Shown in pieces: positions 3,430 through 61,061 of a stretch of DNA of 64,000 nucleotides (positions within the stretch are counted from its first letter, which is position 1; each line of letters starts with the position of its first letter). Both the position numbers and the translations under genes were made by a program. Below the pieces are notes generated by a model. The model did no database searches. It was not told the origin of the DNA and saw only the letters and a list, made by a program, of their open reading frames with translations. The stretch comes from Carpediemonas membranifera BICM (lineage: Eukaryota; Protista; Fornicata), in contig JAHDYR010000062.1 of assembly GCA_019828565.1 (NCBI GenBank), positions 235,666-299,665 on the forward strand, in the 5' to 3' direction.

Positions 3430-6400
3430 CCCAATGGGTGAGCGCCTATGTCGTCGTTGTTTTAGCACGTTGGGTGGGCCGCCCGCCCTGTGGGTTGTTG
3501 GTGGGCGGCCCGGGTGAGCGTCTTCTTTGCTTGATATTTCTCAGGACCAGAAGCATGCGCCATTCACATGTGCTTGGCCAGAACAGCTGCTTCCTCCAGA
3601 GTCACAGACGTGGCCCAGGTTCCTTCCCTCTTAGACTGACCTAGGGTGTACCACTTTGCATCAGCCACGCGCCCTCTGGTGCTTGTCGGGACTTTTCATT
3701 GCCGATATATAGCGCTTCTGGCCTCGCTTGCATTCTTGGCAGCATCGTTGCCTAACTGCGCATAGGTGGGAGCGGCCACTTTCGGCGGCGCCTCCCAAGG
3801 CTGGAGTTCCGGCCACCAGACCAGGCCAGGTCCTCGATGGCGTTCCAGGCTTTGCCTCTACCGCTTTGGTCCCTGCGGGAACAGTTTAGAAAGAGTCACC
3901 CGGGCGTGTGGCAAGTACAGCCCAGCCTTCCTGGCGGGCTCCAACGCTGCGCCTATTCCGGCGCCTTCACTTCACCTATTCCTGCAACGTGCTATATATA
4001 CACATCCCTTTAGACTCTGCACTGCTTCCTCCACTGCTTGGTATGGCTCGTTACTCATGCATCTCTTAGTCTGGTTCATTAAAGCCTGGTACCCACGTTA
4101 TTCCACGATGCGTAGGAGGGCTCTTCTTCCCTCCCGTCAGCTTCCAGATTTAGGCGGCGGCAAAGCCTCCCTCGAAGCCTGGCCCTCAGGGACTCCTGTA
4201 ATTTTGTTCCACTTGGAGCCTGAGGGCTACAGAAACAAGAGCCGCCTCCGAGGAATTTTCTCCAAAAGCGATGCGCCGCGCTGGGAGGCGCTGGCGCTCC
4301 GCTCCGCTCCTCTTGCTAGGGCTTCCCTTTCGCTTGGCCAGCTGGCCTTGGAGTCGGAGCAGCCTCGTTGTTGCAGCCGAGACTTCCTCTTCGTAATGGC
4401 TCATGATCACTTGCCGCTCTTCTTCAGCTCTTCGCTCCACACCTCCGCTTGGAAGAGGCTTGGATGTGAGCACCATCGTCGGCCCGTGCCCAGTCTCCTT
4501 TGGAGTTTGGGAACTCTTCCCTTCCAGGGCGCCGGCGTGAGGTGCTCAAGCTTCCTGGCTCAGAGGGAGAGGCATCGCCAGAGTTGTAGCCTCTTTGTGA
4601 GGCGTGAGGATCCGCCTGTCCCAGGGCCCACGGGTGTTCATTCCTCAGGAGGTGTAGCAGGGCTTTACCTGGTGCCTTTGATAGTGATGAGACTGCCCTT
4701 GAGGTGTGGGCGTACCTGGCGCGGGTTGTGTTTGTTTCCCTTGCCTGCTGAGGGTGGCGTTCACCTTCCTTTAGCAAGGATATGGGTTTGTGACCTGTGT
4801 CCGGTTCTCGGTGAGCTGGGCCCTCAAGCAGCCTAAGGCCGAGAGCCACTCCATGCCTTGGTGAACTCGTTGGTGAGCCTCTCCCGGTGCTCTTCGAGGA
4901 AGGCAGGCTCTTTGACCCTTGCCTTACGGTCACAACCTCTTTGCTCTCGCTGCGACCTGTGCCGTCGTTGTTCTGGGTGTGCAGAAGGAAGTCACAGGCG
5001 GATGAGGTAGTCTCATCGCTGGGACTGCATCCAGGGCCAGGAAGTGCCGTCGTATTGTTCGCTGAGGCGCTCGGGCGGCGTCTTCCAGGCTCCCTCCTTG
5101 CCCGAACCTGTGCAGATGCAGTCCTGAAGCCGAGGAAAGAAGTTTACACATAATGCCTGGGCCCTCTATCTTGGCGCCGGGTTCCTTGCTTACGATGAGG
5201 ATTCGGGACGCCCGCTGGTGCTCTATCGCCGATGTTGCCAGGCGGTGGATGAGCCCAGGGTGTCTGGCTGCTGGGCTGAGCATGCATCATGTCTACACTG
5301 CTTATGGGCGGGACCAGCGAGGCTGCACAGATAGGGTCAGGAGGCTCGTGGAGTTTGACCGGGAGGTTGCTCCGACCTGTCCAGGGTGGTACGGTTGCCA
5401 TAGAAGTCTGGCCAGTAGCTTCTCCCTTGCTACGCGGCGCCTACCGTTCCGCGTTTTCGGATAGGAGCTCAAGAGCCAGAGGGTCTCGATGGCAGGGCGG
5501 GAATGAAACGAACAGCTACGCTCCTTTAAGGACCATGGGTTCCTTTTCCTGGACAACTGGAACTCTTGCGCGGTCGTGTTGGCCGTAATAGTTTCCCTTC
5601 GGACGCGGCGGTATTAAAAGATCACGTGCTGTAGTTTGAGGGTGTGATGACTCGCCCTCTATGGCGTTCCGGAAATCCTCTACAACCAGATTACGGGACG
5701 TGTCCTACTCTAATGATGCTTTGTGCGTCATGCTCCTCGTGCGCGATTAGTTCCGCTCCCACATCAGCCCAGGTCAAGGTTATACAGCATGTGGATGGCC
5801 AGGGAGAGTCTTGTAGAAAGAGCGTTACATCGCAAGCGCACAGTGACAGTAGGCTGGTGCGTTTCTGTGAGTAGCACAGCCCAGCAGGTTCCCTTCTCCT
5901 TTGCTGGTCCGCGGAGTCCAGACCTTGGCCTGCTCGGCGCACTGCCTTCTGGTCCTCCTGTGGGAGGGTCTCTCGGACCGGGCGGTCCCTCCTGGGAGGG
6001 TAGAAGAGGAGTGTGCTATTGAGACGTACACCGCATCTAGGCCGGCAGCCGATTAGGTGGGTGGCTACTATGCCCTGGCCGTGGGAATCCGGTACGTGTT
6101 GGCGCTCGTGAGGACGGCGTTTCAGCTACGCTGGCAGTCAGGTGGATGGTGCCGGTGTCGCCCTTCCGACGCTGGGAGGGCATCGATCATTCCGCGCACC
6201 ATGTGGTGCTGTTTGGGAATGTGCTTTCGAATCCCTGCCTGCAGTGGTGATGTCATCGACGAGGTGAGGCTGCAGCCGTGGAGATTCTTGAGCTCATCAG
6301 CAGAGCCTGGTCGAGGTCGGCCACCCAGATATCTTCGCCCTAACATCCCATTCTGCAGACTGGCGACGATATTCCCGTTAACTTGGTCAAAGACTATGAC

Positions 6401-9400
6401 CGCCCTTCGCATATGACGGCCTCATCGCCTTGGATGCGGGTTTGGGCCTTCAGAAGTCCAATGCATCCCGATCCAGCATCCTCTTGCCCTGCACGGGTTG
6501 GTGAGCAGGCAGGACGAATCTGCTGTTGGCTGACGGTTCACCCTTGGCGGGTTGTCACTATCACTGCCAGAAGGACTCTTCTGGCCGAACCATTCGGCGT
6601 TGGGCCGGGCCATCTTAATTGCCACGGTGCCGAGCCACACTTTCGCCACTGGGCATGGTGGCGTTCGCTAGTTGGAGTTCCAACCACCGCTTCGCAATAG
6701 AACAGCATTCAGGATCTGCGCTGCATTATGTTGGGTTGGCCAGTGGTCGGGTCGCGCCGTTTGTGCGAACAGCATAGGTTGATTGCTGATTGCCGGGCGG
6801 GTGGGTCCGTCCCTTTGGGCCGCCGTTGGGCGGAGCTATCACCTGCACTTGCTCTGCTGCGCACCATTATTCGGTGTGACCAGGAGGGTTTGCCTGGTAG
6901 GAGTGGAGTTGTCGGTTTGCTCGTTGCCCTTAGGCGAGGCCGTCTGTGGATTCGGTGGCGAGCAGCTTGGTACCCTGGTCCGCCATCCAGATGTTGCGAT
7001 CACGCAGCGAGGGTGGAAGCGTCGCAGAGACCGTTGGATGAACTGCGGCATTGGCCGGGAGTAGTAGTATCCCATGCGGCCCACAGCTCTTTGAAGCCCG
7101 GAACCGTCCAGCGAAGCGCACTAAGTCTTCAGCCTCACTGCGCGCTGGCGCTCTCGTCGCCGGCAATGTTGAGGGCTGAATCCGTGGGTGTCCTGCTAAC
7201 CAGCACAGGTCTGATACGCATCGGTCCTGCTGTAGCGGGCAGCTATCGCGGAGAACATGCCTGCCACCTTCCCGGGAGGCGACCCGGCCTGTCCGTCAAA
7301 GCACCTCCTGCTGTCTGCTGACGCATCCTCCCAGAGCCCGACCTAAGACCGCCGCATTTGGCGACGTTGTTGTGGGCTCTGTCCACCTGGCACTCGCTGT
7401 ATGAGAGCCGGCTGTGGCTTGGCCGCCTGCATGAGGAGCCAGGCGGCGCTCTGTGGCCGAACCTTGTGTGTGTGCCTGAACCAGGCCCTGTGAGGCTTTG
7501 GTGACCACGACCTTGAGGTGCTGGCAACTAAGCTCGAACAGCAAAAGGATCTAGCCGGTGAGCGGAGACGATTACAGCAAGTTAGCGTTGTATCCCTCGA
7601 AAGATCACTGTGGTGTTGTTACGCTTAGCGAGGATCGGTCAGCTGCTCTTCGGACTTTTGCGCACTCTTTCGGTCGTAGCGCTACGCGTTTTCCAAGCTT
7701 TGGTGAGCTCTGTTCCAGCTTTCGTCTGCATCTGGGTACCTTTCGGCCCATGGCTTTGTTGCATCCTGTGTTTGTGTGGCCGAGTGGTCTCGAAAAGTCC
7801 GAGAAGAGTCGGCGTGAATCCCCGAGATGGGCCCTCCCCCTCCCCTGCCCGCCTCCGCCTGGGAGACGTTGCCGGCGCTCGTGAGCTGGGAGACAGTCGA
7901 GAATGTAAATCCAGCTGGAGAATGAGGAGCAACACCCATCCACGACAGCCAGCCCGCATCGGGGCGAGTGGCCGGCGCTGTTGGTCCTCGCGGTGGATTT
8001 TCCAGGCCGCACTGGCTTACCCACCCATGGCCTTCCGGTTATCAGGGGCGTGAGTGGTATAGCAGGATGTCATGTTTCTCTAGCATTTGGGATGGCGTTT
8101 CCCTTTCTCGGCTGGGATTCTGCCACCGCACCGCTGGTGATCCACTCCTGGGGAAGGGATCCTTTATCTTGCTATACTGCCTAGGTCGCCGTACATCCGG
8201 ATCAAGTCGGCGATTTTTCTACTCGGGTTCCTCAGTGCGTACTTGCGTGAGAGGCCCTAGGGATGCTCGGGGAGGAGATCTTCTGCTCGGGCAGCAACGT
8301 ACCCGCCCCCTGTGGGTTCCTGGGAAACGCGTCCATTGCGCGGCCGGTGGCTCGGATGAGGAGTGTGCATTTTAGTGCTCCATCACCTGATGCATCACCA
8401 TAGCCTTGTGGCGTTGCACGTTGGCCCTTTCCGAGCAGGGGGCGGGGAGGTGTGGCCTATTGCCCGCGAGATGCGGGGTCGGTTGCGAACCTTGCCAGCC
8501 ATAGCCAGGAGTTCACCACGTTTTCGGTTCCTGTTACACCCAGTGCCCGCCTGCGCCTGGCGAGCACCGAGGCCCAGGCATGCTGCCGCAGCTAAGGTTC
8601 AGCCTTCTAAGGTACCTGATTCCCCTCTTGGCCCCTCATGCCGATCACCTCCAAGGCCCAGGCATTGCCGCGGCGGGAGCCCCAGACCCCTGAGAGGGCT
8701 GGGGGTCGGAGTTCTTCCACCATGCAGTCGTCCTCTGTGGAGGGAGCTGCCCCCCGGGTCATTGGCATTGCCTTCCATCCCGCAGCGCCCGCGCCTCTGC
8801 TCCCAGCCTGGTGGGATGGGGGCCCTCGGGAGTCCCTCAGCGCCGACTCTTCCGCTCCTTCCAGGGGGAAAGCCGTCCCCCGCCGCCTCCAGCTGGCCCG
8901 GTCCCCCTGCCCCGGTCCTCACGGCGGCGAGGGGCGCTGCCCCGTTTGTCACGCCATTGGCTTCCTCCCCAGCTCGCTCGCGCCGTTCGTCGGCCTGGCA
9001 TGAGCTCACGCGTCAGTCAGCCCCTCGACGCTCTCAGCACTTTGGATCGCATCGCTGCATGGACTGGCACTCGTGTGCCTATAGCAGCTTCGTGGACATG
9101 CTCCATGGGGGGACCGACGAGGATCAGCCTGTCGAGAACCTTACAGGCCATTTTTAGGCATTCCAGCGCACTTCTCCAGTCCCAGATGGTTATGTATCGC
9201 GGCAGCAGCAGGGCGCTCTCGAGGCGGGCCCTGCCCAGGCAGTATAGTCCCCTTCGGTTTCCCATTTCCTTGCCGACGGAAGCCCCTCAGCTGAGTTCCT
9301 GGGCGCCGGGACTCCTCAGTAAACACCCAGGGTTGAATGGGGGTTGAGACCATGTTGCTGCTGTTCCTTGCGGTATCTGCCTACCACTCACGGGTTGCTG

Positions 9401-11088: not shown

Positions 11089-12999
11089 TCTGCCCTCCCC
11101 ACAAAATGCCGGAGTCGCGACTCGGCTGACTCGGCCACTCTAGGCTGCGTCGTCCCCGAGCCCCCCTGCGCCTCCCGCCCCATCGCCGCATCGCATAACG
11201 CATCCCCTGCCCCCTGCGCGAGAGTAGTTGCTCGAAATTCCGCGGAGTCGCGTGTTGTTCGGACAACCTGGGAAAGTAAATTCGGCCATGGTATCCAGAG
11301 GAAAGTTGCTCGATTCGCCGCCGCAAGGCGACGAATCCTGCCATACATCCGATGAAGGACCAGGTGACACGAATTACCAGAAACTAGCGCTGTTCGCTGC
11401 GCTCCTGCGCGTAATGGACGAAATTCGTCAGCACTGCCCGAAAGGCTCGTGGCCGAAGAACGCTGAGGCCTTCATCGAGGTTTGTATGAACAAAGATCGT
11501 TTATTGCGCCTTGTGACGGACAACAAACGCTTCTTCACGATCAACAACCTTTCTTTGATCACGGACTACGTTCATGCGGCCACAAACCGCTTCGGGCCAG
11601 GCCATAAGCCGAAGGCATCCCGCCGTGATGACCACATCGCCAATGCCACTTCACTTCTTCACGCCGCAGCCACCAACCAGGTGTTCACTGCTACGATCTC
11701 GATTGATCGTGCCAACGAGGCCCTCGAGCGCGTGATACGGGGCAGAAGGACCGATGAGCAGCTCATGAGGGGAGCACCCTCGTCCGCTCCGCCCGTCCGA
11801 GATCGCCGCTCGCCGCGCCAAGACCGGGCGTCAGTCATACGCCCAACTGATCAGCCGTGTCGAGGAGGCCCGCCCGGCAAGCCCTGCGCGAGACCGCACT
11901 GCCTTCCTCGAGGCAGAAGCATACGCGTGTCGCGTAGCTGCTGGCCGCGCAGACCGTCAACAGCAGGGTGACCGGCCCCCGAGCCCCACCCCCTGCCGAT
12001 GCTGCCCCCACCGACTCCGCTGCCGCCCTAACTGGGCCGCAGCCCGCAGCCGCCCCCGCAGGGTGACAGGCCCACGCGCCAGACCCCCGCCCAGGTTGCT
12101 CCCCACCCAGCCAGAGGGAGAGGAACATCGACGACACCGCAGTGTCCGAGTTCCTCTCCTGGCGGGCGTCGAAGGCGGGGAAGGGGAGAGAGCTGAGCCA
12201 GAGACCGAGCACGAAGCCCGTGGTGACTCAGCCAACTCCCCCTTCGCCCGCCGCCGCAGGTTGACCCCGCCCACCGGCTCACAGGGTGGCTCGACCGCAC
12301 GACCATCGACGCTGTTCGCCGCAGCTTTGACGCACATGTACCGCGGGAAGACAGAGACATGTGGTCGACCAACGACCAGGTCGTCGCGACGCTGACGTCT
12401 GTCGACGCCGTCCGCTGGCTCTCCCGGGGGCAAAATGGCCAGAACCGCATGTCCAGAGCACGCTGGACGACTCTCCTCGAGCAGGTCTTTGCGGCTCACC
12501 CGAGGAACCGGCCTTCGTATGCGTTCCCGCAAGGCCTGAAGTCGTTCGCACCCAGGTTCGTGGCGTTCATGAGGGAAGGGTTGGGTATGCCAGTCGACCC
12601 CGCTCTCCCAGCTGTCCCGCAGCCAAGGACGGCCCAGCCAGCCAGAAGAAGGCTCACTGCTCCCCGCCCGCAGCCGGAGACCATCCTTCCAGAGCTCCCA
12701 GAGGACCTCAAGTTCCTCCCCTCCCCGACGGAGGCCGGCAGGATTGGGAAGTCGAAGCCCCTCAAGGAAGGGTGCGGTCTCATTCGTGAAGGGTCTCATC
12801 AACCTGTTGGAGGCCCTGAACGAGGTGCCTGCCCAGCAGAAACGGCGTGGCCTTATTGCCATCATGACCCATGGTCAGACGGTGTAAGAAAGAAAGAAAT
12901 TTATGGTGCTTGGATTCTGACCCCGGACTGAGCTTGTTTCCCGTTGTCTTGGAGCTGAGTGCCCCGGGGTACTGCCTATTTCCCGTGGCAAACTGGTCA

Positions 13000-14918
13000 G
13001 CAGCGTTTGCCTTGGGCTTTCGGTGCTACTGTCTCCGCGGAAAGCCGATTCCAATCGCCCCAGAGGCCCTGCGGCCATCTCCGTGCAAATATGCTTTCCC
13101 TGTCTCCCCTGAAAGTCCGGCAACTATCCGGGGAGCCTGGGGGTCTGTCCTCGGGGCATTGACAGGCAGGATCGTCCTGCAGAACCTTGACTATGACACT
13201 CCTTGCTTCCCTGCAGTCCTTGTAGAGCCGTTCAGCCACGGCACCCTCTCGTCTGTCCGGTTCCCCAATTCCATGCCCCCTCGACTCTGTTAAGAGGCCT
13301 ACCCGAAGGCGGGGAAAGTGACTAAGTCCATGCTGTCTACCCCGGTTAGGTGGCGTGGGTCAGGGCATGGTGTAGGTACCCCCAGGCACTAGGCCTGGTT
13401 GTCCTGTTACCCCTTACAACATTTCGCTTGCACTACATGTCCTTGGTTTCCCATGTCGTTAACAGGGCGGCAGGGGCACCTGTGCCCCTCCGACCCCCGT
13501 GGCCAGTCCCTGCAGTTTCCTTTGGGGTCCCAACGAGTGGTGCAACCATATGAATATGGATTTCCTTGACCTTATCCTTGCTCTGTCCTTGTTGCATGTC
13601 CTTTCTTTCTTATTTCTGGTCTGTCCTTCCTGTTAATTCCTTGCAGTCGTTCCTTCCCTTGCTTTGGTTCCTGGCTACCGGGATACGTGGGGCCTTTCCT
13701 CACTGATCCCAGGAGCTTAGCACCCAGCGAGGGTGGTCCATGGCTGATTCCTTGTCCATCCCTTCCCGGTCCTGGAGTCAGGGGTTCATGACATGCTTCT
13801 ATTCCACCTTGAAGCTGTTGTAAACCTTTGCCAGTTCCCGTAGTCCTGCCGTGAGGCCTTCCCAAATGTCTATTTCTGTCCATGGGGTTCGCTGGAGTTC
13901 GCTCCACACTCCGTTCCCGAACACTTTGTCCCTTGCCTTTGCTCCCCTGTTGTTCACTGGGTCGCCCATGCATGCTCTTATAGTCTCTTCCCATTGGTCC
14001 GAGCTCTTGATCCTGTTCAGCTTTGAGACTGTGACTGGCCCCTCCTTCTTTTTCATGGGCCAGGTGTGCACCTCGGGTATGGCCAGAGCCACGTCTCGCT
14101 CACTTCTGCCATAGTACCGTTGTTCCTTCCATGCTAGTGTGATTCCATTGTGTGCTGAGCCCCATACCCCGACCTTCTGAGACTCTACCACCTCAATCTC
14201 CGCCCCCTGGATTCCTGGTGTTGTCACTGCAAAGTCCGGGGTTGATGTTCCTGATGTGAGCGTCCCAGACTTGGGTATGATGGCTTTGAGCCTGTGCTTC
14301 TCCATCATATCCTTCCACCGGGTGGATCTTTCCATCTGGCCTGGGTCGATGTTCCAGTCTCCCATAATTATGGCCTCCATGCTCCCTTTCATGTCCATGA
14401 TCTTCTGTATAGTGTCCCTGAATCCATCCTTCTCCTGCTTGCTGTGGCCGGATGGAGGGCCATACACGTTGATGACTAGTATGTCCCTGCCGGTTCTCAT
14501 TATGCTGGCTTGCACTCTTCCCGATAGGCTGTCCGTTATGCCGATGTCCCACTTTGCAGTTGCGTGTGGGCTCACTCTCGTGCCGATGCCTTCCCTTGTT
14601 CCCTTCCATCTTGGCGCAGGTTCGTCATTGCCTGCTATGCCTAGTTGTCGGTTGATGCGGTGCTGACTTTTGACATCCGCCTTTCGTTTTTTCGTTGGCT
14701 AAGACCAGGTCCTCTTCCGTCTCCCTCCCTGCTAGTGCGTAGTCAAGGTCCATGAAGCAATGAACCCTCGTATTCGCCGTTCTCCATGTCTCTTGTATGA
14801 GTACTGCCTCTATGTCCTTCAACCTTAGCTGAATCGCCGTTGCCATAGACGCCGTGAAGTCCTTTCCTCTTCCTATGTGTCCCTCTGTGTTCAGACTAAG
14901 TATCTTGTAGGTTACCAT
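13000..14918 (-). pseudogene. ORF2 of element 2: AP endonuclease, frameshifted, no recognisable RT
   Basis: KILSLNTEG..VLIQETW (14918-14625), then VINVYGP, IMGDWN, PDFAV..SAHNG (14575-13799); only ~0.9 kb follows. Confidence 0.85.
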
Positions 14919-15250
14919 TGCCTTTGTCCTGTTTCCTTATCCTGCGAATTCCCAGAATTTGGGAGCCCCAGCTTCCCGCTCCTCTCCTGCTATCCTTGTC
15001 CTAACAAGGGGCCTAGATGCCGGTCTCGGTGACCCTTGTCAGGCCAACCTTGTTACCACCTGGTGACCTTCCATTCTTCGGGCAGGGTACTTAGGAGGGG
15101 GACGATATGACGTGACCCCCCTTTGGCTGCCGCTACAGCCTACCGGCAGTGCATTTCAGCTAATGCCGGGCCCTGGGTGGGAGCCAGGGCTTGTGAATTA
15201 TAAAGAAAATGTTGCTTGTTCCTTGAAAGAATACTGCTTTTACCATGTCC

Positions 15251-18200
15251 TTACTCCTCCTCCGTGGACTCCCCACTGCCGCTGCAGCTGTCCTCGGCCT
15301 GACTCACTTGCTGTCCTTGTAGACTCTGCATTACCGTGATGAACTGGGTCATCAGGTCCATGGGTGAGATCTGCTTGGCCTTCTTAGCCTTCTTGTGCTT
15401 GTGCCGGGGGATCGTGGGCTTCTCCTTGCTGGGCTTAGTCGCGACGCCGGAGAGCACCAACCTTCCGTGGCCTTGCTCTTGCATGAGTCGGGCAGCCTTG
15501 AGCGCTGAGATCTCTTGTTGCGCCTCTGCCAACTGCTTTCGGAGCCGCAGCTTCTCCGAGTCCATGCCGGTTGCCTGTCTGCTTCCAGACTCCCAGTCCA
15601 TGTCCTCTTCGTGCCTGCTTCTCTTTCCGCTGTCCGAGTCCATGATCCTACTCGTGCTGCCCTCCTTGCGCTTGAGCGTCGTGGAGGAAGAGTGATCCTT
15701 GCTGTTGTCCATGCCTCCCTCTGAGCCTCTACCGGCCCAGGTGTTCCCGCTGAACGAGCCTCTCATCTGCGTTCCCGTGTTGTCCTGTCTCTCCCTGTCG
15801 TCTCCTCCGTGGTTACGATCCGAGGTCCTGTTCATGTTACCAGCTCTGTCGCCGGTTCTGTCGTCAGCTCTGACACCAGCTCTACCGCCGGCTCCGTGTC
15901 CTACCCTTCTGTCCTCTTCCCTGTCTCCATGCTGGTCGTGATGTCCTTGATCCGCGTCCTGGCCGAAGTGCCTGCCCACCATCCTGGTGCTAATCCGCCT
16001 CGCCTTTTCCTCCAGGCCGTTGTCGAAGAACCTACTTTGGTATGGCTGTTCGGACTTTCCGTCGATGGTGGGGACATACGTGATGCCTGGGACATTGACT
16101 GTGTTGGCTCTGGGCTCGTCCGGGATAGCTGCCGAGACTAGTCTGGCCCCTTCCTTGCGCATGCGGCTTAGGATGGTCCCAGCCTCGCTGACCCTGACCA
16201 TGCCCCAGTCTCTCGGGATGAAGCTCGCCCCTAGGGTGATCCTACCCCTGTTCCTGGGGGGCCTTGACGTTGACTATGACCTTCTCATAGTCCCTGAGGC
16301 TCTCTGCTAGGTCGTCGCAGCCCCAGACTCCTTGATGAGCCGTAGCCTCCTTCGAGGGCCACCACTCGTATAGCATGGCCATGGTTATGATGTCCTCCTC
16401 CCTTGCTGCCCCTAGGCCCTTCCTGACGCGTACCATGCGGAGCTGGTTAGCCGTGGCTCTTCCATGATGGTCCATAGCGGGCTTCTCTCCAGTACACCTT
16501 CGTTGTCCATGATTGTGAGGGGGCCAGTAAGATGCCCTTCATGCCCAACAGAACCTCCCCCGAACCCGAAGCCGATGCCGAAGCGGTGTCCGTTGTCCGG
16601 GACTACGAGGATCCTGTCGCCGACTTCCCTGCTGACGTCCCTTGCGTCCCCGATCGGGTACGTGCCGAAGATCTCAAAGGTGTCCCTCCTTGTCGCGAAT
16701 TCCGGGCCTCCCATGATATCCATGCCCGGCTCCGCCTTCCCGACTGCTTCCATGGTCTTGTCGAGTGCCTTACCCATGTAGTGGTAGACGTCTGGGGTGC
16801 TCATCCTCTCCTTGCATAGGGCCCTGATCCTGGCTGTGAAGACTACTGTATCCGCCAACCCACAGTGGTAGCAACCCGCGGTGTGTCTGTGGTACGGACA
16901 GACTCCCTTGGGCTCGCTCCTGTTCTGCCATCCATTTGACCATGTTGTTACTGCTTCCAGGTAGTTGGCCTTGTCGAGGTTGTCCCTGAGGTTTTGGCCA
17001 GCCTCCTCCTTGCCGTTGTTCTCCAGGATCTCTGGTAGCTTCTTCTCGTCCACCAGCCTAGCTTGGAAGAATTCCCTGGTTCCTTGCTCCAGTCCATTTG
17101 TGGGGTTCGTGAGGAGGAAGCTTTCCATCTCCACCCCCTTTGCATACATGATTATCTTCCAACCCTCCGACCTTTCGATCCTTGCCAGCTGAGCCGCCAG
17201 GCGGTTGGCCCAGTCCCTGAAAGTATGTATGTGCTTCTCATACTCGATCGGCGGCCGCCCCGTCCCGACCTCCACGAAGGTGGCCGGCGGCAGCCCCGTC
17301 ACTGCCCATGCCGTGTACCTCGCTTGGTCCATGCTTGCTGCCGGTATGTCCTGGTAATACAGGCCATGCCCGTGTCCAAGAATGTCCCCAGTGCTGAGGT
17401 CAAAGAGTACGATCCCGCCCTCAACCGGGATGGCAGGGATCCCTGCCTTCTTGACGCCAGGGTCTGCGCACTCGAAGTCGATGGCTCCGATCACCAGTCG
17501 TTTCTCCTTGTCCTTTCTAGGCATCCTCGGCGGCTGGCTGCTGACCTTGTTTGAGTCGACCTCCTCGTCCTGGTCGATCTTGCCTTGGTTGGCCCCGACC
17601 ATGTCCTTGTTCACTTCCAGGAGGCTGTCGTCGAGGCTTCTTCTGCCGGGCATGGTGGCCTGCTGGCGTCGTTCCTCCTTGTCCTTGACATGTTGCTCCT
17701 CGTCTCCGTCGATGACCGTGCTAGCGGACGACCTGTCCAGATCGGCATGTTCGTCCCTATTGCTGCGGACCGAGGTGGCCTTGAGCACTTCCAGCCTCAC
17801 CTTCCGGAACGGCGGCTCGTTGCTAAGGGGGGTCTCCTCCCCTTCGCCCAGGATATTGGTTCTGCCCTTCAGGTAGATCCCTGACTTGTTCCATGCTGCC
17901 TGCCATATGGCCGGGGCCTCCGGTGCCTGAAGCCTGAGGATGTCCCTAGCCTCCTCCATGAAGCGGCTGATGGACCATGCTGACGTGTCGCTTAGCTCTA
18001 GGATGACCCTGTACTTGCCGTCCTCTTGCTCGTAGGCCACTCTGGTGACCGGGCCTTGGTTTGCCGGATCCCATACCTTGTCGTAAGGCACGCCTTCTAC
18101 GGCCTCGTCTCCATGAGCCCCTGATACCAGTATGAACGACCCTTCGGCCTTCTTGACGCTGTCCCTGTCTACATCCCATTCGATGGGCCCATCTTCCTTC

Positions 18201-18754
18201 GGCTTGAGGATCGCCGTCTCGATGTCCTTCTCAGATGGCCATCTTGCCATGCCAGTGAAGCCCGCTTTCAGCGTCTTGGGCTCCAGTGCCTGTGCCATGT
18301 CCTTTGCTTCCTCGTCTCTGGGGTTGAGCGCCTCTGTGAGCATGTAGAAAAGGTCGCGGAGGCCGTGGATGCCGCATGGGTTCCTGAGGATGATGTCCTT
18401 GTTGTCAGTGACGCCGGTTGCGAAGAGGATGCGTCTGGCGTTCATGATTACTTCCTTGCGTCCTTTGGAGTTCGCATTGAGCGACTTTCCTGTAAACTTG
18501 CCTGTTCTACGAAGAAGTAGAGTCCTTGAATCGTTCCTTTCAGCGAGGAAGCTGTCCAGTAGTTCCCTGATGTCCTCCCACTGCTTCTGCGTGGAATCCC
18601 TGATCCTTGTCGGTATTTCTACCTGCATTGTTGAGTGCAAAATTTCTCCCCTTTTCCTAGTCCATAAACTGGGTCGGAATTTTTGGGTCCGAAAGTCGGG
18701 CCACATGTACATATCCGGGTGAGGTCTCCGTCCAGGCCTTCCAGTTTCTCCCAT
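15251..18754 (-). CDS. ORF1 of element 2 containing a Maelstrom-like (DEDDh/ECHC) domain; split by frameshifts near 16450 and 16240
   Basis: 780-aa ORF 18754-16412 plus pieces 16475-16242 and 16201-15251; motifs IDFEC, PVEGGIVLFDL..H.L, YAK, CPYH..YHCGLAD. Confidence 0.78.
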
Positions 18755-21705
18755 TGTCCATGCTCCGAACTATATAGGTCATTCTTTCCAAAAAGGCGCG
18801 GTCCTAAAAATGCGTCGCCCTTTTCTGAGTAGCGGGGCCTTTCTGTGTAGTTGTTGTTGCTTTGTTCGTAGTCTCCTTTTAGCCTCTATCGACGGCCCCT
18901 GTTTCCCTTTTGTGCTGCCCTTCCTTCCTTGTGGTCTTGACAAAACCATGTAGCCGCCGGTGCTAGCACTGGCCCTCGACGGTTGTTTTCCTTTTCCTTG
19001 TAAACATACGTTCCATGAAGACACTTTGATTCCTTGGTATGGGCGTGGAGCTCCCACTCGCGCCCAGCGGTATGCCCTGATAGCAACCCTTGAATGTTCA
19101 GACAGGGAGGCCAAGGCCGCTCCTTCTGAGCTCCATGGGGCACTGCCCTATCCATATAGGCCAGGCCTGTTGGTCCTTGTCCATCCATGATCGAAGTGTT
19201 TCCACTTTGCTGAAATCATTGGTGAACTGGTCAGACGGTGTACAAGCCCGCCAAGAAGCAGGTGACACTGCGGACCCGGACCAAGGAGCGCTCGGCCTTC
19301 ACCAAGGCCTCGGCCGGCTACTACTCCAGTGGCCTGAAGATCCTCCTGTCTGAGGACATGGACCTCAGCCCGACCGAGGTTGACGAGAAGCTGGTGGAGC
19401 TGCAGGCCGAGCCAATGGCAGACCCACGTCTCTTCCACCCACAGCAACGGGCGGGTGCGCTGGAGTCATATGAGGTCACCCCGGAGTCTGTGACATGGGC
19501 CCTGGACAGGCTCAAAGCAGACTCGGCACCGGGACCCTCGGGCCTGAGTTTCCTTCACTTGAAGCTGGCCTACCGCCTACGCAAACACAAGTTTGTTGCT
19601 GCTGTCACGCCTCTGATCAACGACATCATCAACGGGGAGCCCTACACTGAGATCCTGTCGCACTCGAGGCTCGTTGCCCTGCCTAAGGGAGACTCCAAGG
19701 TCCGGCCCATTGCAATGGGCGAGAGCCTGAGACGCCTCGCAGGCAAGGTCCTAGCCCACGATGTCGGGCTGAGGATTATTGGCGATGGTGTGTGCGAGGG
19801 GCAGTTCGGACTGGGCGAGAGCTGCGGCCTGGACTGCATGGGTGACATTCTGAAGGCAGCGTACGCCGGCGGTGCGCAGCTGTGCGCCGTTGACATGTCC
19901 AATGCGTACGGAACCGTCAGTCGGCAGCATCTGTCTGAGGTCGCACAGGCGTGGGCCCCGGTCTTGCTACCGTACCTGCACACGATGTATGCCGGGGGCA
20001 AGATGATCACACCAACAGGCCTTGTCATCCCGTCCCGGGAGGGCATCCAGCAAGGGGACCCCATATCTCCGCTGCTGTTCACCCTGGCGATGAAGCCGGT
20101 CCTGGACCAGATCAGAGGTGAGTTCCAGGAGTGCAGGATGGTCTCCTATCAGGACGATGCTTACTTGATCGCGCCAGCGTCCATGCCGGCCTCACGAGTT
20201 GATCGGTTCTACGACCGGATGGCTGAGGTTTGTGGCCGCATCGGCATGCGCGTGAACACGGCTAAGTGTATGGTGATCAGCGCTGCTGGCTCCCCGGGTG
20301 CCATTCAGCGGGTAGTCAACGGTAGAGCCGTTGGAATCCCTGTTGGTGACGCTCATGGTGAGGCAAGAGCTGTCGATGATGTCTTCTCGGAGATGGAGAT
20401 GGCGACTGCTCGCGTCGTGGAAATGGTGGAGACTGTAGGGCCTTCTGCGGCCAGCGTTGCGCTGAATATGATTCGTTCATGCATTCTTGCGATGCCATCC
20501 GCAATCTACAGAGCTGTGTCGCCGATTAGGCACGAAAGCAGGACATCCCGCTTCGAGCAGATGCTTAGCCGCAGCGTAGAGCACATTCTGCAACTAAGAG
20601 ATGGTCTGGAAGGCAAAACTCGTAGAATGGCTCTCGATTATGGAGATTACGGGCTCCGCATGCCAATCCCATCACTCGTCTGGAAATGCGCATTTTTGGG
20701 CACGGAACACCAGCTGCACCAGCTGCTTCCGGACCGGTCTGTGCACCTAGACGAGGCCCTGTTTACCGTTGAAGGCGCCGAAGAGTGGCCTAGGACCAAG
20801 GACGAACTCTATGAGATGGAGGCCAAAAAGCCTCAGAAACAACTCACAAAGTACCATAGAGACGCCTGGACAGTCCAGCACCGCCCATCAACGCCGTCTG
20901 ACTTCAACTTGGACCGCAATGCGGCCACTCAGGCCCTGAACGACTCCTCCCAGCGCGCTGCCCCGGCGGCTGGAATTCTCCGGCAAGAGGCCGCACTCAC
21001 CCCAATTGAGCTAGAATCGAAGCCTGTTGGCTCAATATTTGTCCCAATTGCCAGGGCACACCTGGATGTCGCCCCGTTCGAAGAGTGGCCCGAGACTTGC
21101 CCCCTGTGTCAGGCCCAGCGCTGCACCTGGCAGCATGCCCTCTCGTGCCCACACACCAAGGGAACCGCCCACACCGAGCGTCACAACCATGTTAGAGACG
21201 CTGTGAGCGCCGTGTTGACCGACGACGACGTTAGAGGTCGACCCATGGCCCGTTGCCAGGCCGAGGTCGCGCTCACCTCTCGTCACCCCCGCTACCAGCA
21301 GGCCGATACCGAAGCGCCCAGACGCAAGGTGGCCGACCCTCATGGTGGCAGGCGAGAGAGACGTGGTCGGGAACCGTGTCCACGAGGAAGTCTATGTCGA
21401 CTTCGTGGTCAGCCTGCACCCGCGGGAGGCTGAGCTAGAGAAGCTCCGCGAGTACCGCAACTGGCAGGTCACCTTCGTGCCTGCTGCCTGCACGGTTCTG
21501 GGCGAGACTGAGTCCCGTCTGACCGAGTGCTGGGTCGCCCGCCTCTGTGCCGCGATTCGCAGGCCGGCCCTCGTGGGCGCCATCCGTGACCGGGTATTCT
21601 GGTCCATCTGGGCGGACAACCAGACCGTCTGGTCGGACTATGTCTCCCAGTGCAAGGCCCGTTGGGCCGAGCACCACCAATAATCTGCCCTCCCCACAAA
21701 ATGCC

Positions 21706-32732: not shown

Positions 32733-35483
32733 TTAAAAGTGGGGCCCGAGAAGGCTGAGGTTCATCCTCCTGGTGAGGTCCTCGTTTGTTCTGATGGCGT
32801 CAGCGACATAGCTGCGGAGGGAGGTGACGTCCTTCCATGTGCCCATTGAGAGGATCACCTCCAGCGGGACTCCTGATAGAGCCATCTCCGACGCTGCCCC
32901 CTTACGGAAGCTGTGGAGACCCGTCCGTGGACCGAACAACGCCTTCACGACTCGTCGGAGGTGTGCGGCTGTGAGCGGTTTGTCTCTGCTCAGGCGCCCG
33001 TTGACTATGACTCGCCAGATGGGGGTGTCATCAGCCAGGTAGTGTGTGCCCTCGACCCAGCGTCTAAGTGCCAAGGCCGGGTTGAAGGCGGCTGATAGCC
33101 ATACGTATGGTACGCGCTTCTTAACTCCCGTTAGGATGGTCTTGGTCCGCTGAATGTGTAGGAGAATGTCGCCGTTCTTGAGTAGCTCCAGGTCGGCCGG
33201 GCATAGGGAGAGTATCTCGATGCCTCTGGACACCGTCAGATAGGCGACTGCCCCAAAGAGACATGCCTGATATGACTCAAAGTCGTCACTCCGGCGCCCC
33301 AGTGCCTCGATCATCTCAGCCTTGGTGATGGCGCGCGAGCCGCCGGTAGTTCCCGCCGTGCTGGCGCCCTTAGCCGCCTGCTTAACGATGTACTTGGAGT
33401 TGGCGGGCGGATGCCAGTCTTTGAGGAACTCCTGTAGCTGAACAATCCAGTAGCCCTTCCTCGCCACGTTCGATGGCCCGCAGAAGGAGCCTTCGTCCTT
33501 GAGGAAAGCTACAAGCTGGTCTCGATCCGACAGGCTGCGATCGCGAGAGCCTTCGAACCTGGCCACCCAGCCGGCCACCGTCCGAGCAGACGCGTGATTA
33601 AGGTGAATCACTCTGTCCGACCTGAGGACTCTGTGGAAAACGTCCTGAACGCCATCACATTGAACCGTAGGCGTCCTCTGTCCTGTAGGTGAAGTAGGTG
33701 GGCCAGATCTGAGCTCGAAGCCGGGACGGAGAGACGGAGTTTCCAGGACGTCCAACTCTTGAGGAGTCTCATCTCCGGCGCTTGAACCTCTGGGTAGAGG
33801 AGAAAGACTGCTGAGGTCCAAGACCTCGGGTGTCCAGTCTGAGTCTGAACTCTCGCTGTCGCTATCTTCTGGACTATGGCTGCCATAGACGAATTGGGGG
33901 CCCAGAGGACGCGACATCCAAGCCTTACGTCTACGTCCGTTGAGACTGTCTGGACTGGACCCCACTCCGCGAGGACAGATTCCATGCTGGACTCCAGAGA
34001 GGAAGGGAGTCGTGAGAAGCCTCTGGACAGCCGATCTGCTGCCAGGTTGATGATGCCCGGAGTGTGTAGTCCACGGAGTGTCAGGTTCCGGTCCTCCGCC
34101 TCCTTCTGGATCTGGGCTAGAATGTGCAGGGCCTGAGGTGGAGCCTTCGTAGACCCCGCCTTGTTGAGCCAGGCCAGAGCTGATGTGTTGTCTGAGAAGA
34201 TCGATAGCTCGCGTTGGGAACTCTGTCTGCCGATCAGACGGATGCCCTGTAGGATTCCCGCGAGCTCCTTCACGTTGATAGATTCTGCTCTTAGTTCTGG
34301 AGTGAACGTGCCCGAGGCTGAGGTCCCATACTCGCCGTGCACGGCTGCTCCCCACTTGACTCCAGATGCGTCTGTCGATACGACGAGGTCTAAGGAGGGG
34401 TGAGCGCCCCAAAGCGACTGAAGTTCTCTGATGTCTCGGACTGGGCGCTCTCTTAGCAGTAGCAGCCACTCTTGCAGTAGCTCCTTGGAGAGTGGGTCCT
34501 GTTGAAGGTGTCTCAGCCGGAGGAAAGCCCCGTGGGCGGTTGTAGCGAAGTAAGTCAGTCTCCCGAGGATCTTGGCCCAAGTCTCCTGATCGATGGTCTT
34601 GCCTGCCAGAGCCTGATGAATGTGAGAGGAGTAACGTTTGGCCTTGTCCGCCGGGAGGCGTATTGTAAAACTCGCGGAGTCTATCACGAGCCCCAGATAG
34701 ACCAATGACTGAGTCGGTGCCCATTCTGACTTCTCCTCTGAGGTGAGGACACAGAGGTCGGCTAGAGTCCGCCTGATGCGCGGCACCGCCCTCCTCAGGA
34801 TTTCTCGGTCGCGGTGAAATAAGAGGAAGTCGTCGAGGTAGACAACGATGGTAAGACCCGTCCGAAGGGCTAGTATCTTGGCGAGTTGGTTGGTGATCGT
34901 CTGAAACACGAACGGCGATGCGCGCCAGCCGAAGCCTAGCACTCTGTACTGAAACGCTCGTCTGTCTGGAAGATAGACTCCTAGCAGCTTGCGGTCCTCC
35001 TTCCGTACTGGTACTTGATGGTACCCGGACTTGAGGTCGAACTTGACCATCCAGTCGCCCCTCTGGAGAAGGGAGAGAGCTCTGCGCAGACCGTAGAGCC
35101 GGAAGGATGAGCGCTCTGCCGAGCAGTCGTTCAGTATCGTGAGGTTGTGAATGATCCTCTTCGACTCGCCCTTCGGCACAGTAAACAGCGAGGCGGTGTG
35201 TCGCAGGGAAGAGGGATTCACTTGCTCTATGACGCCTGTCTCTATCAAGGAAGGAATCTGCTGGACAATGAATGGGGCGACTGTCGGCTGTTGCCTTGGT
35301 GCTGGTGGTTGACTTCTCAGACGGATCTCGACCCCGTATCGTAACCAGTTGATCACCCGTTGTGATGCTCCCAACCTCTGCCACTCCCTCCACGCCGCGT
35401 TCATGCATGGAAAGAGGGTTAGGTGTGGGCTCTCTTGCCGGAGGATCCTGTCTGAGTGCGACCTCGGTCCTGAGCGCGGCCAC
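32733..35483 (-). CDS. Tyrosine recombinase ORF (YR domain C-terminal; overlaps RT in another frame)
   Basis: SRGIE, RTKT, HSFRKG, GTW, RSY catalytic motifs; true start uncertain. Confidence 0.9.
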   Translation of the reverse strand: MAALRTEVALRQDPPAREPTPNPLSMHERGVEGVAEVGSITTGDQLVTIRGRDPSEKSTTSTKATADSRPIHCPADSFLDRDRRHRASESLFPATHRLAVYCAEGRVEEDHSQPHDTERLLGRALILPALRSAQSSLPSPEGRLDGQVRPQVRVPSSTSTEGGPQAARSLSSRQTSVSVQSARLRLARIAVRVSDDHQPTRQDTSPSDGSYHRCLPRRLPLISPRPRNPEEGGAAHQADSSRPLCPHLRGEVRMGTDSVIGLSGARDRLREFYNTPPGGQGQTLLLSHSSGSGRQDHRSGDLGQDPRETDLLRYNRPRGFPPAETPSTGPTLQGATARVAATAKRAPSPRHQRTSVALGRSPLLRPRRIDRRIWSQVGSSRARRVWDLSLGHVHSRTKSRIYQREGARGNPTGHPSDRQTEFPTRAIDLLRQHISSGLAQQGGVYEGSTSGPAHSSPDPEGGGGPEPDTPWTTHSGHHQPGSRSAVQRLLTTPFLSGVQHGICPRGVGSSPDSLNGRRRKAWMSRPLGPQFVYGSHSPEDSDSESSDSDWTPEVLDLSSLSPLPRGSSAGDETPQELDVLETPSLRPGFELRSGPPTSPTGQRTPTVQCDGVQDVFHRVLRSDRVIHLNHASARTVAGWVARFEGSRDRSLSDRDQLVAFLKDEGSFCGPSNVARKGYWIVQLQEFLKDWHPPANSKYIVKQAAKGASTAGTTGGSRAITKAEMIEALGRRSDDFESYQACLFGAVAYLTVSRGIEILSLCPADLELLKNGDILLHIQRTKTILTGVKKRVPYVWLSAAFNPALALRRWVEGTHYLADDTPIWRVIVNGRLSRDKPLTAAHLRRVVKALFGPRTGLHSFRKGAASEMALSGVPLEVILSMGTWKDVTSLRSYVADAIRTNEDLTRRMNLSLLGPHF
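33608..35404 (-). CDS. DIRS-type RT + RNase H + reduced methyltransferase-like tail
   Basis: DLKSGYHQ, FGWRASP, YLDD, TDAS, INVKEL, SDN, ADRLSR. Confidence 0.95.
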   Translation of the reverse strand: MNAAWREWQRLGASQRVINWLRYGVEIRLRSQPPAPRQQPTVAPFIVQQIPSLIETGVIEQVNPSSLRHTASLFTVPKGESKRIIHNLTILNDCSAERSSFRLYGLRRALSLLQRGDWMVKFDLKSGYHQVPVRKEDRKLLGVYLPDRRAFQYRVLGFGWRASPFVFQTITNQLAKILALRTGLTIVVYLDDFLLFHRDREILRRAVPRIRRTLADLCVLTSEEKSEWAPTQSLVYLGLVIDSASFTIRLPADKAKRYSSHIHQALAGKTIDQETWAKILGRLTYFATTAHGAFLRLRHLQQDPLSKELLQEWLLLLRERPVRDIRELQSLWGAHPSLDLVVSTDASGVKWGAAVHGEYGTSASGTFTPELRAESINVKELAGILQGIRLIGRQSSQRELSIFSDNTSALAWLNKAGSTKAPPQALHILAQIQKEAEDRNLTLRGLHTPGIINLAADRLSRGFSRLPSSLESSMESVLAEWGPVQTVSTDVDVRLGCRVLWAPNSSMAAIVQKIATARVQTQTGHPRSWTSAVFLLYPEVQAPEMRLLKSWTSWKLRLSVPASSSDLAHLLHLQDRGRLRFNVMAFRTFSTESSGRTE

Positions 35484-60270: not shown

Positions 60271-61061
60271 GGAAGGAATTTCTAGAAATGTAGTCCGTTT
60301 AGGACAAGAACACTTTATGAGGAAAAGAGACGACACCAAAAGTGTCGACAGAAACCTGAAGACTATGTAAATAATGTTACTATGTAAATATTGGGTAAGA
60401 CCCACGACAAAGTAGCAGCATACGTGGCTTGTAGGAGCACGCCTTGGGTGTAAACGCTGACGCTAGCAGTCTTACGTCGCCTTCAACAGCGCCTTGCGCG
60501 TGAAGAATACCCTTGTTGGCGGTACGGATCGGAATAACCTCGGAGCTAACTTTTGTCAGCTTGGACGCCCACGTGCTCTTGATGATCGTGACTCCGGCAC
60601 CTGAATCAAGTAGAGCAGTGAGGTTGTGACCATTAATCTGGACTTTGATCAAGGGAACAGATGGCTTAGTCTCGGTCTCGCCCTTAGTCTTTGACGGTTC
60701 GCCCTCGGCCGGTGACTCCTTGGAACTTAAAACACACACGCACTTGGAGGATTTACAGTAATCCTCCAGGTGGCCGACACGACCACACTTCTTACATGTG
60801 TGCTTGGGCTTCTTACACTTGAACACCGAGTGACCCTTGCCACCGCAGTTATAGCAGGTGTAGTTAGAGTAGTCCTTTGCCGGCTTCTCCTTCTTGATTG
60901 CCTTGTGGCCCTTGTTGGTTTCAGCCGACCGGTTATCGGACGAGGGCTTCTTCGGGATCACAGACGAGTCGTGTCTGCGGTCATGGCGGGACGTGTAGGG
61001 TTGACGAGAGGGAGCGTCTTCGAAAGCGCTTAGTAGATCCCGTGACTCTTGGACTTCACGT

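Follow-up and report, generated by a model that had tools for sequence, protein, structure and literature searches.

The Maelstrom (MAEL) domain, defined as Pfam PF13017 (Zhang et al. 2008), is a DnaQ-H/DEDDh RNase H-like domain with an E-C-H-C zinc site, made up of a Glu on beta2 and C-x2-H-x8-C before the last helix. In animals it is represented by Maelstrom (Drosophila 4YBG; Bombyx 5AF0 and 9NHC), which lacks the DEDD residues, is not an exonuclease, carries an HMG box and works with PIWI to silence transposons. The Bombyx protein binds ssRNA. The protist enzyme EhMael (Entamoeba histolytica EHI_192630), in contrast, has both the DEDD and the ECHC residues and is a metal-dependent exoribonuclease (PMC4408791). 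Such protist MAEL proteins are host proteins, either stand-alone or fused to an RRM, with no shown role in silencing. The C-terminal exonuclease of the arenavirus nucleoprotein (Lassa NP, LCMV NP) also combines an ECHC zinc site with an active DEDDh site, and degrades dsRNA to block innate immunity. Among retroelements, hydrolases or exonucleases with intact catalytic residues and an unknown role have been recruited as accessory proteins, namely the esterase (SGNH) ORF1 of CR1/L2/RTEX LINEs and the RNase D-like DEDDy exonuclease ORF3 of the bdelloid Juno/Vesta LTR elements and Athena (Penelope-like) elements (PMC5408684). Here, we describe a Maelstrom-type, predicted DEDDh exonuclease domain in the gag-like ORF1 of an APE-type LINE of the protist Carpediemonas membranifera. 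We did not find a report of such an ORF1 in the searchable literature.

We analysed a 64,000-nt stretch of contig JAHDYR010000062.1 (assembly GCA_019828565.1, positions 235,666 to 299,665 of the forward strand), hereafter called the window. An earlier note, made from the sequence alone, had claimed that ORF1 of a TSD-bounded APE non-LTR element in this window carries the motifs of a MAEL domain. The features are as follows, in window coordinates.

12887-19227, minus strand: LINE copy (6.34 kb) with 5'UTR, ORF1, APE-only ORF2 and a 3'UTR ending in a (TTTC)n tail.
19228-19242, minus strand: upstream copy of the 15-bp target-site duplication, TACACCGTCTGACCA.
12872-12886, minus strand: downstream copy of the target-site duplication.
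16412-18754, minus strand: ORF1 as it is open in this copy (780 aa).
16739-17512, minus strand: MAEL-type DEDDh exonuclease domain, by homology and predicted fold (ORF1 residues 415-672).
17471-17479, minus strand: ExoI motif D426-F-E428, on strand beta1 of the model.
17420-17422, minus strand: E445 on beta2, the proposed zinc-binding Glu (equivalent to Bombyx E137).
17123-17125, minus strand: E544 in AKGVEME, at the start of the helix after beta4, the ExoII acidic position (E in place of D).
16850-16900, minus strand: C619-x2-H622-x7-H630-C631-x3-D635, the putative zinc ligands C, H and C interleaved with the ExoIII H-x4-D motif.
15251-16201, minus strand: C-terminal part of ORF1 (charged region and a short coiled-coil-like stretch), separated here from the 780-aa ORF by indels.
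13799-14918, minus strand: ORF2 remnant, APE endonuclease only (Pfam Exo_endo_phos_2), with a frameshift at about 14692.
13867-13870, minus strand: junction of a 2.33-kb deletion that removed the RT.
5828-6052, minus strand: decayed fragment of a second MAEL-type domain (..CATHRNAPAYCHCALAM) from another LINE family (hmmsearch E 1.1e-5).

First, we verified the motifs, and the observation made in the earlier note is confirmed. IDFEC corresponds to ORF1 residues 425-429 (17468-17482), PVEGGIVLFDL to residues 443-453, YAKG to residues 537-540, CPYH to residues 619-622 (16889-16900) and YHCGLAD to residues 629-635 (16850-16870). The sequence TACACCGTCTGACCA occurs exactly twice in the window, at the two ends of the element, against 0 occurrences expected by chance. 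We rejected the possibility of a chance motif, as the motifs are invariant in six paralogous families that are 31-49 % identical to the window copy and are also kept in relatives down to 24 % identity. The reading of a host gene trapped between repeats was also rejected.

Two points of the earlier description required correction. The window ORF1 is cut short by single-base indels at 16561, 16524, 16462 and 16261. Intact copies encode 1167 aa, the segment 15251-16201 being the same frame after compensating 1-bp indels, and other copies have an extra T after 16459. Secondly, this copy has no RT. It is an RT-deleted derivative of an 8.7-kb master element and is 99.5 % identical over its whole length to another copy, L036, which has an intact ORF1 (L036:3658-7161), different flanks and its own 16-bp TSD. 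Long versions (copies L048, L049 and L050) carry the extra 2.33 kb, and the ORF2 of these master copies has APE together with RVT_1 (E 6e-33). At least 16 genomic copies share the deletion junction and at least 24 continue into the RT; one contig diverges at 13870. The family is young, with at least 24 copies whose domain is 99-100 % identical and free of stops. In our search for RNA data no RNA run was found to hold the element; the one run found consists of low-depth contigs of unknown kind, which show presence only.

Next, we asked whether the domain could be assigned by sequence. Direct searches gave nothing: the Pfam Maelstrom model did not hit ORF1 at E <= 1, nor any of 11 domain sequences at E <= 10, and no exonuclease family was found in them either. 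PDB searches by sequence and by profile gave only noise. A word-indexed protein search with the window ORF found only two C. membranifera proteins, and with MAEL queries it found only three MAEL proteins, too few for a phylogeny. Scans of GTDB genomes and of JGI metagenomes found no relatives. However, a profile of the six paralogous families run against 1.84 billion representative proteins gave 16 hits. Fifteen of them are ORF1-like proteins of C. membranifera or of assembly GCA_002919055.1, and the sixteenth (E 5.5e-5) is a Rhizamoeba saxonica protein, P0017, which scores 69 bits (E 5.7e-19) on PF13017. Profile-profile comparison (hhalign) of 11 retroelement domains with two or three Pfam-positive MAEL proteins gave 98.7 % and 98.6 % probability (E 3.6e-16 and 9e-16) over 181-190 columns running from ExoI to ExoIII. 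In the reverse direction, a MAEL profile found the element copies in the genome (E 2.6e-4). Compared with the protist MAEL proteins, the domain is too diverged for the Pfam model and has an insert of roughly 50 residues between beta5 and the C-x2-H motif.

We then predicted the structure of the domain with AlphaFold. A single-sequence prediction was unusable (pLDDT 33), whereas the alignment-based model (pLDDT 89.6, pTM 0.89), whose 18-row alignment included two MAEL proteins, is a DEDDh exonuclease fold. Every strong Foldseek and VIA match is a DEDD exonuclease. The three best matches among 48,161 PDB representatives are the Maelstrom structures (Z 12.0-12.4). Over the comparisons made, the Maelstrom structures ranked first with the longest alignments (Z 12.0-12.8 over 191-196 residues), against at most 11.8 over 150-182 residues for the others; the Z-scores of MAEL and of other DEDDh enzymes differ by less than 1, which the tool treats as a tie. 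The arenavirus NP structures match at Z 10.5-11.2 with the highest sequence identity among the matches (17-18 %), but this similarity is structural only, with no sequence hit to PDB.

It is conceivable that the domain is a generic DEDDh exonuclease (RNase T/ERI-1/Rv2179c-like) acquired independently of MAEL, with convergent or coincidental ECHC-like residues. The tie of the Z-scores, the absence of a direct Pfam Maelstrom hit and the nearest named ESM-Atlas clusters, which are Rv2179c-like and RNase_T rather than MAEL, favour this view. Against it, no RNase_T-type protein among the 1.84 billion reached E 1e-3, although such proteins are far commoner than MAEL, and the only non-retroelement hit is a MAEL protein. 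The Pfam RNase_T model found nothing in this genome, and the hhalign scores and the match to the published zinc site also speak for MAEL. We consider this alternative very unlikely.

At the sequence level, the C-x2-H-x8-C-x3-D spacing is identical to that of Bombyx C290/H293/C302/R306 (PMC4408791). E445 aligns to the E of PCEIG in P0017, which HMMER aligns to the Glu of Bombyx LIGEF (E137), and the secondary-structure positions of the four putative ligands in the model are consistent with a single zinc site. D426, E428, E445, E544, C619, H622, H630, C631 and D635 are all kept in LINE families that are only 24-33 % identical. Of the two extra His of the EHHCHC signature, H463 is invariant among the six Carpediemonas families, though not in every relative, and aligns to the conserved His of the MAEL proteins; the second position is Thr or Ser in the window family and its closest relatives, and His in most other ORF1 families. 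The conservation of the full catalytic set, as in EhMael, indicates that an active nuclease is likely, although this is inferred without biochemical data. The alternative, that the domain serves only as an ssRNA-binding module of ORF1p like the inactive Bombyx protein, is in line with the RNA chaperone nature of typical LINE ORF1 proteins and with the Glu at the ExoII position. It appears unlikely, because all five catalytic positions, which animal MAELs lost, are invariant here and the protist enzyme with the same residues is active.

ORF1 does not correspond to a described ORF1 domain set (RRM/CTD with coiled coil, CCHC knuckles, PHD or esterase). No Pfam family matches the 1167-aa protein, only weak coiled-coil-type hits appear at the C-terminus of relatives, and ESM-Atlas features for residues 1-400 gave no usable hit.

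The interpretation given in the earlier note is only partly supported. The MAEL-type DEDDh assignment, the E-C-H-C motif, the retained catalytic residues, the location in ORF1 of an APE-type element and the lack of a described precedent in the searchable literature held. The proposed capture of a host silencing-type RNase is not supported. We searched the genome for a host MAEL gene, as had been suggested beforehand, using the Pfam Maelstrom model and a MAEL profile, and found no host-like MAEL gene. The Pfam model was blank, but it was also blank in every control genome and is thus weak evidence of absence; of the profile matches, every one examined lies in a retroelement ORF, and the rest are multi-copy. 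Moreover, the domain is shared by several deeply diverged LINE families of this genome and by LINEs of GCA_002919055.1, which have the same ORF1-ORF2 layout. It is therefore an old component of the clade, and we rejected a recent capture. A single-ORF MAEL-APE-RT family also exists.

Taken together, we conclude with good confidence that ORF1 of this LINE carries, at residues 415-672, a Maelstrom-type member of the DEDDh (DnaQ-like) 3'-5' exonuclease superfamily, having the residues of the MAEL-specific zinc tetrad (E445, C619, H622, C631) and, unlike animal Maelstrom, a full catalytic set (D426, E428, E544, H630, D635). In this view it is a native, ancient module of ORF1 in a whole clade of Carpediemonas LINEs. 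Our data establish the homology, the fold (as modelled), the motif conservation and the location inside an active LINE family, whereas zinc binding, catalysis, substrate and role are inferred. It is likely that ORF1p binds the RNA of the element and that the domain would act within this RNP as a Mg2+/Mn2+-dependent 3'-5' exo(ribo)nuclease. The role we prefer is trimming the 3' end of the transcript, or of the primer/cDNA, so that the (TTTC)n tail is presented for target-primed reverse transcription by ORF2p.

Two other roles are possible but appear unlikely. The nuclease might act on DNA, trimming the 3' flap of the nicked target or proofreading cDNA, since DEDDh enzymes act on both RNA and ssDNA, Pol III epsilon, TREX1, DinG-exo and RNase T are among the fold matches, and the element relies on APE nicking and a short (TTTC)n tail. 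However, EhMael, the closest characterised relative, was tested on RNA only, where it is active, and in most families the domain is in ORF1p and not fused to the RT. The counter-defence role proposed in the earlier note would involve degradation of host small RNAs or double-stranded RNA, by analogy with the arenavirus NP exonuclease and ERI-1-type siRNA nucleases. The genome does encode two Piwi-domain (Argonaute-family) proteins, and arenavirus NP, with the same ECHC and DEDDh combination, suppresses innate sensing. This role remains hypothetical, as no evidence on substrate supports it, there is no sign of recent capture from a host silencing gene, and the position of the domain in cis with the RNA-binding ORF1 of every family fits a role in the element's own RNP equally well. 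A more remote possibility, which we consider very unlikely, is that active MAEL-type (ECHC and DEDDh) exonucleases are an ancestral retroelement or virus nucleoprotein module, from which the host Maelstrom of animals and/or the arenavirus NP exonuclease descend, rather than the element having taken the domain from a host. The animal anti-transposon factor would then be a domesticated transposon protein.

LINE ORF1 proteins are known as RNA chaperones, with a few enzymatic exceptions such as the esterase type, and a conserved, apparently active 3'-5' exonuclease would be a new enzymatic ORF1 type. It points to an unrecognised nucleolytic step in the LINE life cycle, or in its conflict with the host. 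This domain defines a transposon-silencing factor in animals and sits in the RNA-coating nucleoprotein of arenaviruses, where it blunts host sensing, and its presence inside a transposon's own RNA-binding protein gives a testable link between these systems. Protist-type MAEL nucleases could also be studied with this protein. Finally, an RT-less derivative that keeps ORF1 and APE has still reached at least 16 copies, which bears on how strict cis-preference is in LINE mobilisation.

The window, C54:235666-299665 of the 24.2-Mb, 69-contig assembly of Carpediemonas membranifera (PMC8516963), is almost entirely made up of retroelements. It holds RT/restriction-like-endonuclease elements on the plus strand, Ty3-like elements with chromodomains, tyrosine-recombinase ORFs and APE-type LINEs. 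Among the neighbors of the LINE described below, we observed the following:

32733-35483 and 36425-39175, minus strand: two tandem 916-aa ORFs with a C-terminal tyrosine-recombinase (Phage_integrase) domain, which suggests DIRS- or Crypton-like elements.
51528-54281 and 56341-60405, minus strand: Ty3/gypsy-type polyproteins (protease, RT, RNase H, integrase) ending in a chromodomain, one of which is full length at 1354 aa.

We first checked the ORF at 16412-18754 (minus strand, 780 aa), where the earlier note had placed a Maelstrom-like nuclease domain inside a LINE ORF1. The note's observation held, as every motif that it listed was present at the positions where it had placed them:

residues 425-429: IDFEC, with DFE at 17471-17479
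residues 443-453: PVEGGIVLFDL
residues 537-540: YAKG
residues 619-622: CPYH
residues 629-635: YHCGLAD, at 16850-16870

The element is bounded by a perfect 15-bp direct repeat, TACACCGTCTGACCA, at 12872-12886 and 19228-19242. These are the only two occurrences in the window, and none is expected by chance. A 99.5%-identical copy elsewhere in the genome (locus L036) has different flanks and its own 16-bp duplication. The element therefore runs from 12887 to 19227; it starts with GTTCACCAATG and ends in (TTTC)n. The two target sites examined, window 19228-19242 and L036:3171-3186, look alike (CACCGTCTGACCAG versus CACCTAGTCAGAGCAG) and both lie inside other retroelements, which hints at a target preference.

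Next, we searched the genome with the nuclease domain as a query and found at least 24 copies that are 99-100% identical with no stop codon, together with many partial copies and whole families at about 67%, 50% and 30-35% identity. Intact copies have an ORF1 of 1167 aa. The window copy differs by single-base indels at 16561, 16524, 16462 and 16261, which cut ORF1 at 780 aa and separate off the 15251-16201 ORF, which is in the same frame. Another data set shows the missing base after 16459. Some of these indels could be assembly errors. The nuclease domain is unaffected. Downstream lies an APE endonuclease ORF (Pfam Exo_endo_phos_2), but no RT.

Longer copies of the element (loci L048-L050) showed why the RT is absent. 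The window version lacks 2.33 kb at about 13867-13870, and in the long version that stretch encodes RVT_1 (E 6e-33). At least 16 genomic copies, on many contigs, share the identical deletion junction, and at least 24 continue into the RT. The window copy therefore belongs to an RT-less derivative that keeps ORF1 and APE. As the junction is shared by these copies and L036 has its own target-site duplication, this derivative has itself been mobilized repeatedly, presumably using RT supplied in trans.

We then asked whether the domain is MAEL-like. Direct sequence searches were uninformative: Pfam gave no family for ORF1, nor for any of 11 domain sequences at E ≤ 10, and PDB sequence and profile searches gave only noise. 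The Pfam Maelstrom model found nothing in the genome, but this is weak evidence, as the same search gave no match in any control genome either.

In contrast, profile methods gave a clear answer. We aligned six paralogous families that are 31-49% identical to the window copy, and observed that D426, F427, E428, E445, H463, A538-K-G540, E544, D569, C619-P-Y-H622, H630-C631 and L633-A-D635 are invariant in that alignment. An HMM of this alignment, run against 1.84 billion representative proteins, returned only 16 hits. Fifteen of them are ORF1-like proteins from C. membranifera or from assembly GCA_002919055.1. The sixteenth (P0017, E 5.5e-5) is a 352-aa protein from the Rhizamoeba saxonica transcriptome, which scores 69 bits (E 5.7e-19) on Pfam Maelstrom and has the Maelstrom entries as its best PDB hits. 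No RNase_T-type protein reached significance, although such proteins are vastly more numerous than MAEL proteins. We also compared 11 retroelement domains, in an alignment with no MAEL protein included, against two and then three Pfam-positive MAEL proteins by hhalign, and obtained probabilities of 98.7% and 98.6% with E-values of 3.6e-16 and 9e-16, over 181-190 columns from the D-x-E motif to HCALAD. In the reverse direction, the MAEL-protein profile found the element copies in the genome (E 2.6e-4), along with further multi-copy LINE ORFs.

Next, we predicted the structure of the domain. AlphaFold2, with an 18-row alignment, gave pLDDT 89.6 and pTM 0.89; two of these rows are MAEL proteins, as an iterative search would include. 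Foldseek listed only DEDDh exonucleases and Maelstrom, at marginal E-values (1.5e-3 to 1e-2), with the highest TM-scores belonging to Maelstrom chains. VIA-align on the Foldseek list put five Maelstrom entries first (Z 12.1-12.8, 191-196 residues aligned), followed by Pol III epsilon, DinG-exo, RNase T, 3'hExo and ERI2 (Z 11.0-11.8, 153-182 residues). A Foldseek-independent search of 48,161 representative chains also put the three Maelstrom representatives first (Z 12.0-12.4), and all 30 chains with Z ≥ 8 are DEDD nucleases, including the Lassa and LCMV nucleoproteins. As differences under 1 Z are treated as ties in this method, the predicted DEDDh fold is firm, whereas the preference for MAEL within it is only nominal on structure alone. 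ESM-Atlas features agreed on the superfamily (Rv2179c-like, RNase_T).

Chen et al. (PMC4408791) report that Bombyx MAEL binds a structural Zn through E137 (β2), C290, H293 and C302, and that R306 occupies the position of the lost ExoIII Asp. The ORF1 spacing is identical: C619-x2-H622-x8-C631-x3-D635. E445 lies on β2 of the model and aligns to the Glu of PCEIG in the R. saxonica protein, which in turn is aligned by HMMER to the Bombyx LIGEF Glu. The putative zinc site is inferred from sequence spacing, sequence alignment and predicted secondary structure. The predicted catalytic residues sit where a DEDDh enzyme needs them: D426 and E428 are on β1; E544 is at the start of the helix after β4, in the pattern A-K-G-x-x-M-E-x-x-L-L, which resembles A-H-N-x-x-F-D-x-x-F-L; and H630 and D635 are at the start of the last core helix. 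The same paper shows that the Entamoeba protein carrying both DEDD and ECHC is a Mg/Mn-dependent exoribonuclease, while animal MAELs that lost DEDD are inactive.

To see how old and how widespread the domain is, we compared the ORFs in which it occurs. Within C. membranifera, it is found in several LINE architectures: the separate ORF1/ORF2 family of the window; a family whose ORF fuses the MAEL-type domain with APE (protein P0016; loci L044 and L045); and another multi-copy family with one 1748-aa ORF (L046:3869-9115, genomic C6:524869-530115), which runs from the MAEL-type domain (about residues 615-835) to APE (1139-1284) and then to the start of the RT (1650-1738). In the P0016-type family, the ORF at L044:3449-5677 (on C4) has a HADGNCGLHAMAAA stretch upstream of its MAEL-type domain that resembles an OTU-type cysteine-protease motif, but Pfam gave no hit and this remains a motif-level lead only. 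A public C. membranifera protein named 'Splicing factor U2AF' (KAG9395705.1) is the C-terminal part of one of these LINE ORF1 proteins, including the CPYH...HCALAD motif, and its name looks like a misannotation. In GCA_002919055.1, ORF1 proteins of 1129-1250 aa carry the domain, and on the one contig read through, the ORF1 is followed by an APE+RVT_1 ORF2.

A further, decayed trace of the domain lies in the window itself:

5828-6052, minus strand: decayed fragment of a second MAEL-type domain (..CATHRNAPAYCHCALAM) from another LINE family (L026-type), inside the other APE element.

The earlier note had placed this fragment at 7000-7620, but the only profile hit that we obtained is at 5828-6052. 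Every MAEL-profile match that we examined in the C. membranifera genome lies in a retroelement ORF of the above kinds, the remaining matches are multi-copy, and no host-like MAEL gene appeared. The domain is therefore an old, conserved module of this LINE clade, and the data give no support to a recent capture from a host silencing gene.

The homology, the predicted fold, the conservation of the catalytic and zinc residues under long-term constraint and the residence of the domain in the ORF1 of a recently active LINE are what our analyses establish, whereas zinc binding, catalysis, the substrate and the role of the domain are inferred. By this inference, the domain is probably an active metal-dependent 3'-5' exo(ribo)nuclease that works inside the ORF1p-RNA particle. 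The role that we prefer is the trimming of the 3' end of the transcript (or of the primer), so that the short (TTTC)n tail can engage the nicked target. The alternatives are degradation of host small RNA or dsRNA, DNA-flap trimming or proofreading, and pure RNA binding. With regard to host small RNAs, the genome has two Piwi-domain (Argonaute-family) genes (C7:87108-88037 and C65:23790-24737), so that small-RNA silencing may exist in this transposon-rich genome.

Earlier work has described MAEL domains in animals and protists (PMC2628886), the structural kinship of MAEL and the arenavirus NP through the ECHC site (PMC7968707), DEDDy exonucleases as ORF3 of bdelloid LTR and Athena elements, described by those authors as not yet reported in retrotransposons (PMC5408684), and DEDDh nucleases in P and piggyBac DNA transposons (PMC3627910). 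We found no report of a MAEL-type or DEDDh exonuclease in a LINE ORF1 in the literature that we searched, although such an absence is not proof of novelty. The interpretation in the earlier note was borne out in part: the MAEL-type assignment is supported, while its proposal that a host silencing-type RNase was captured for counter-defense is not supported as stated. The finding itself is real, and it places a known domain family in a new and biologically suggestive host, the gag-like protein of a LINE.
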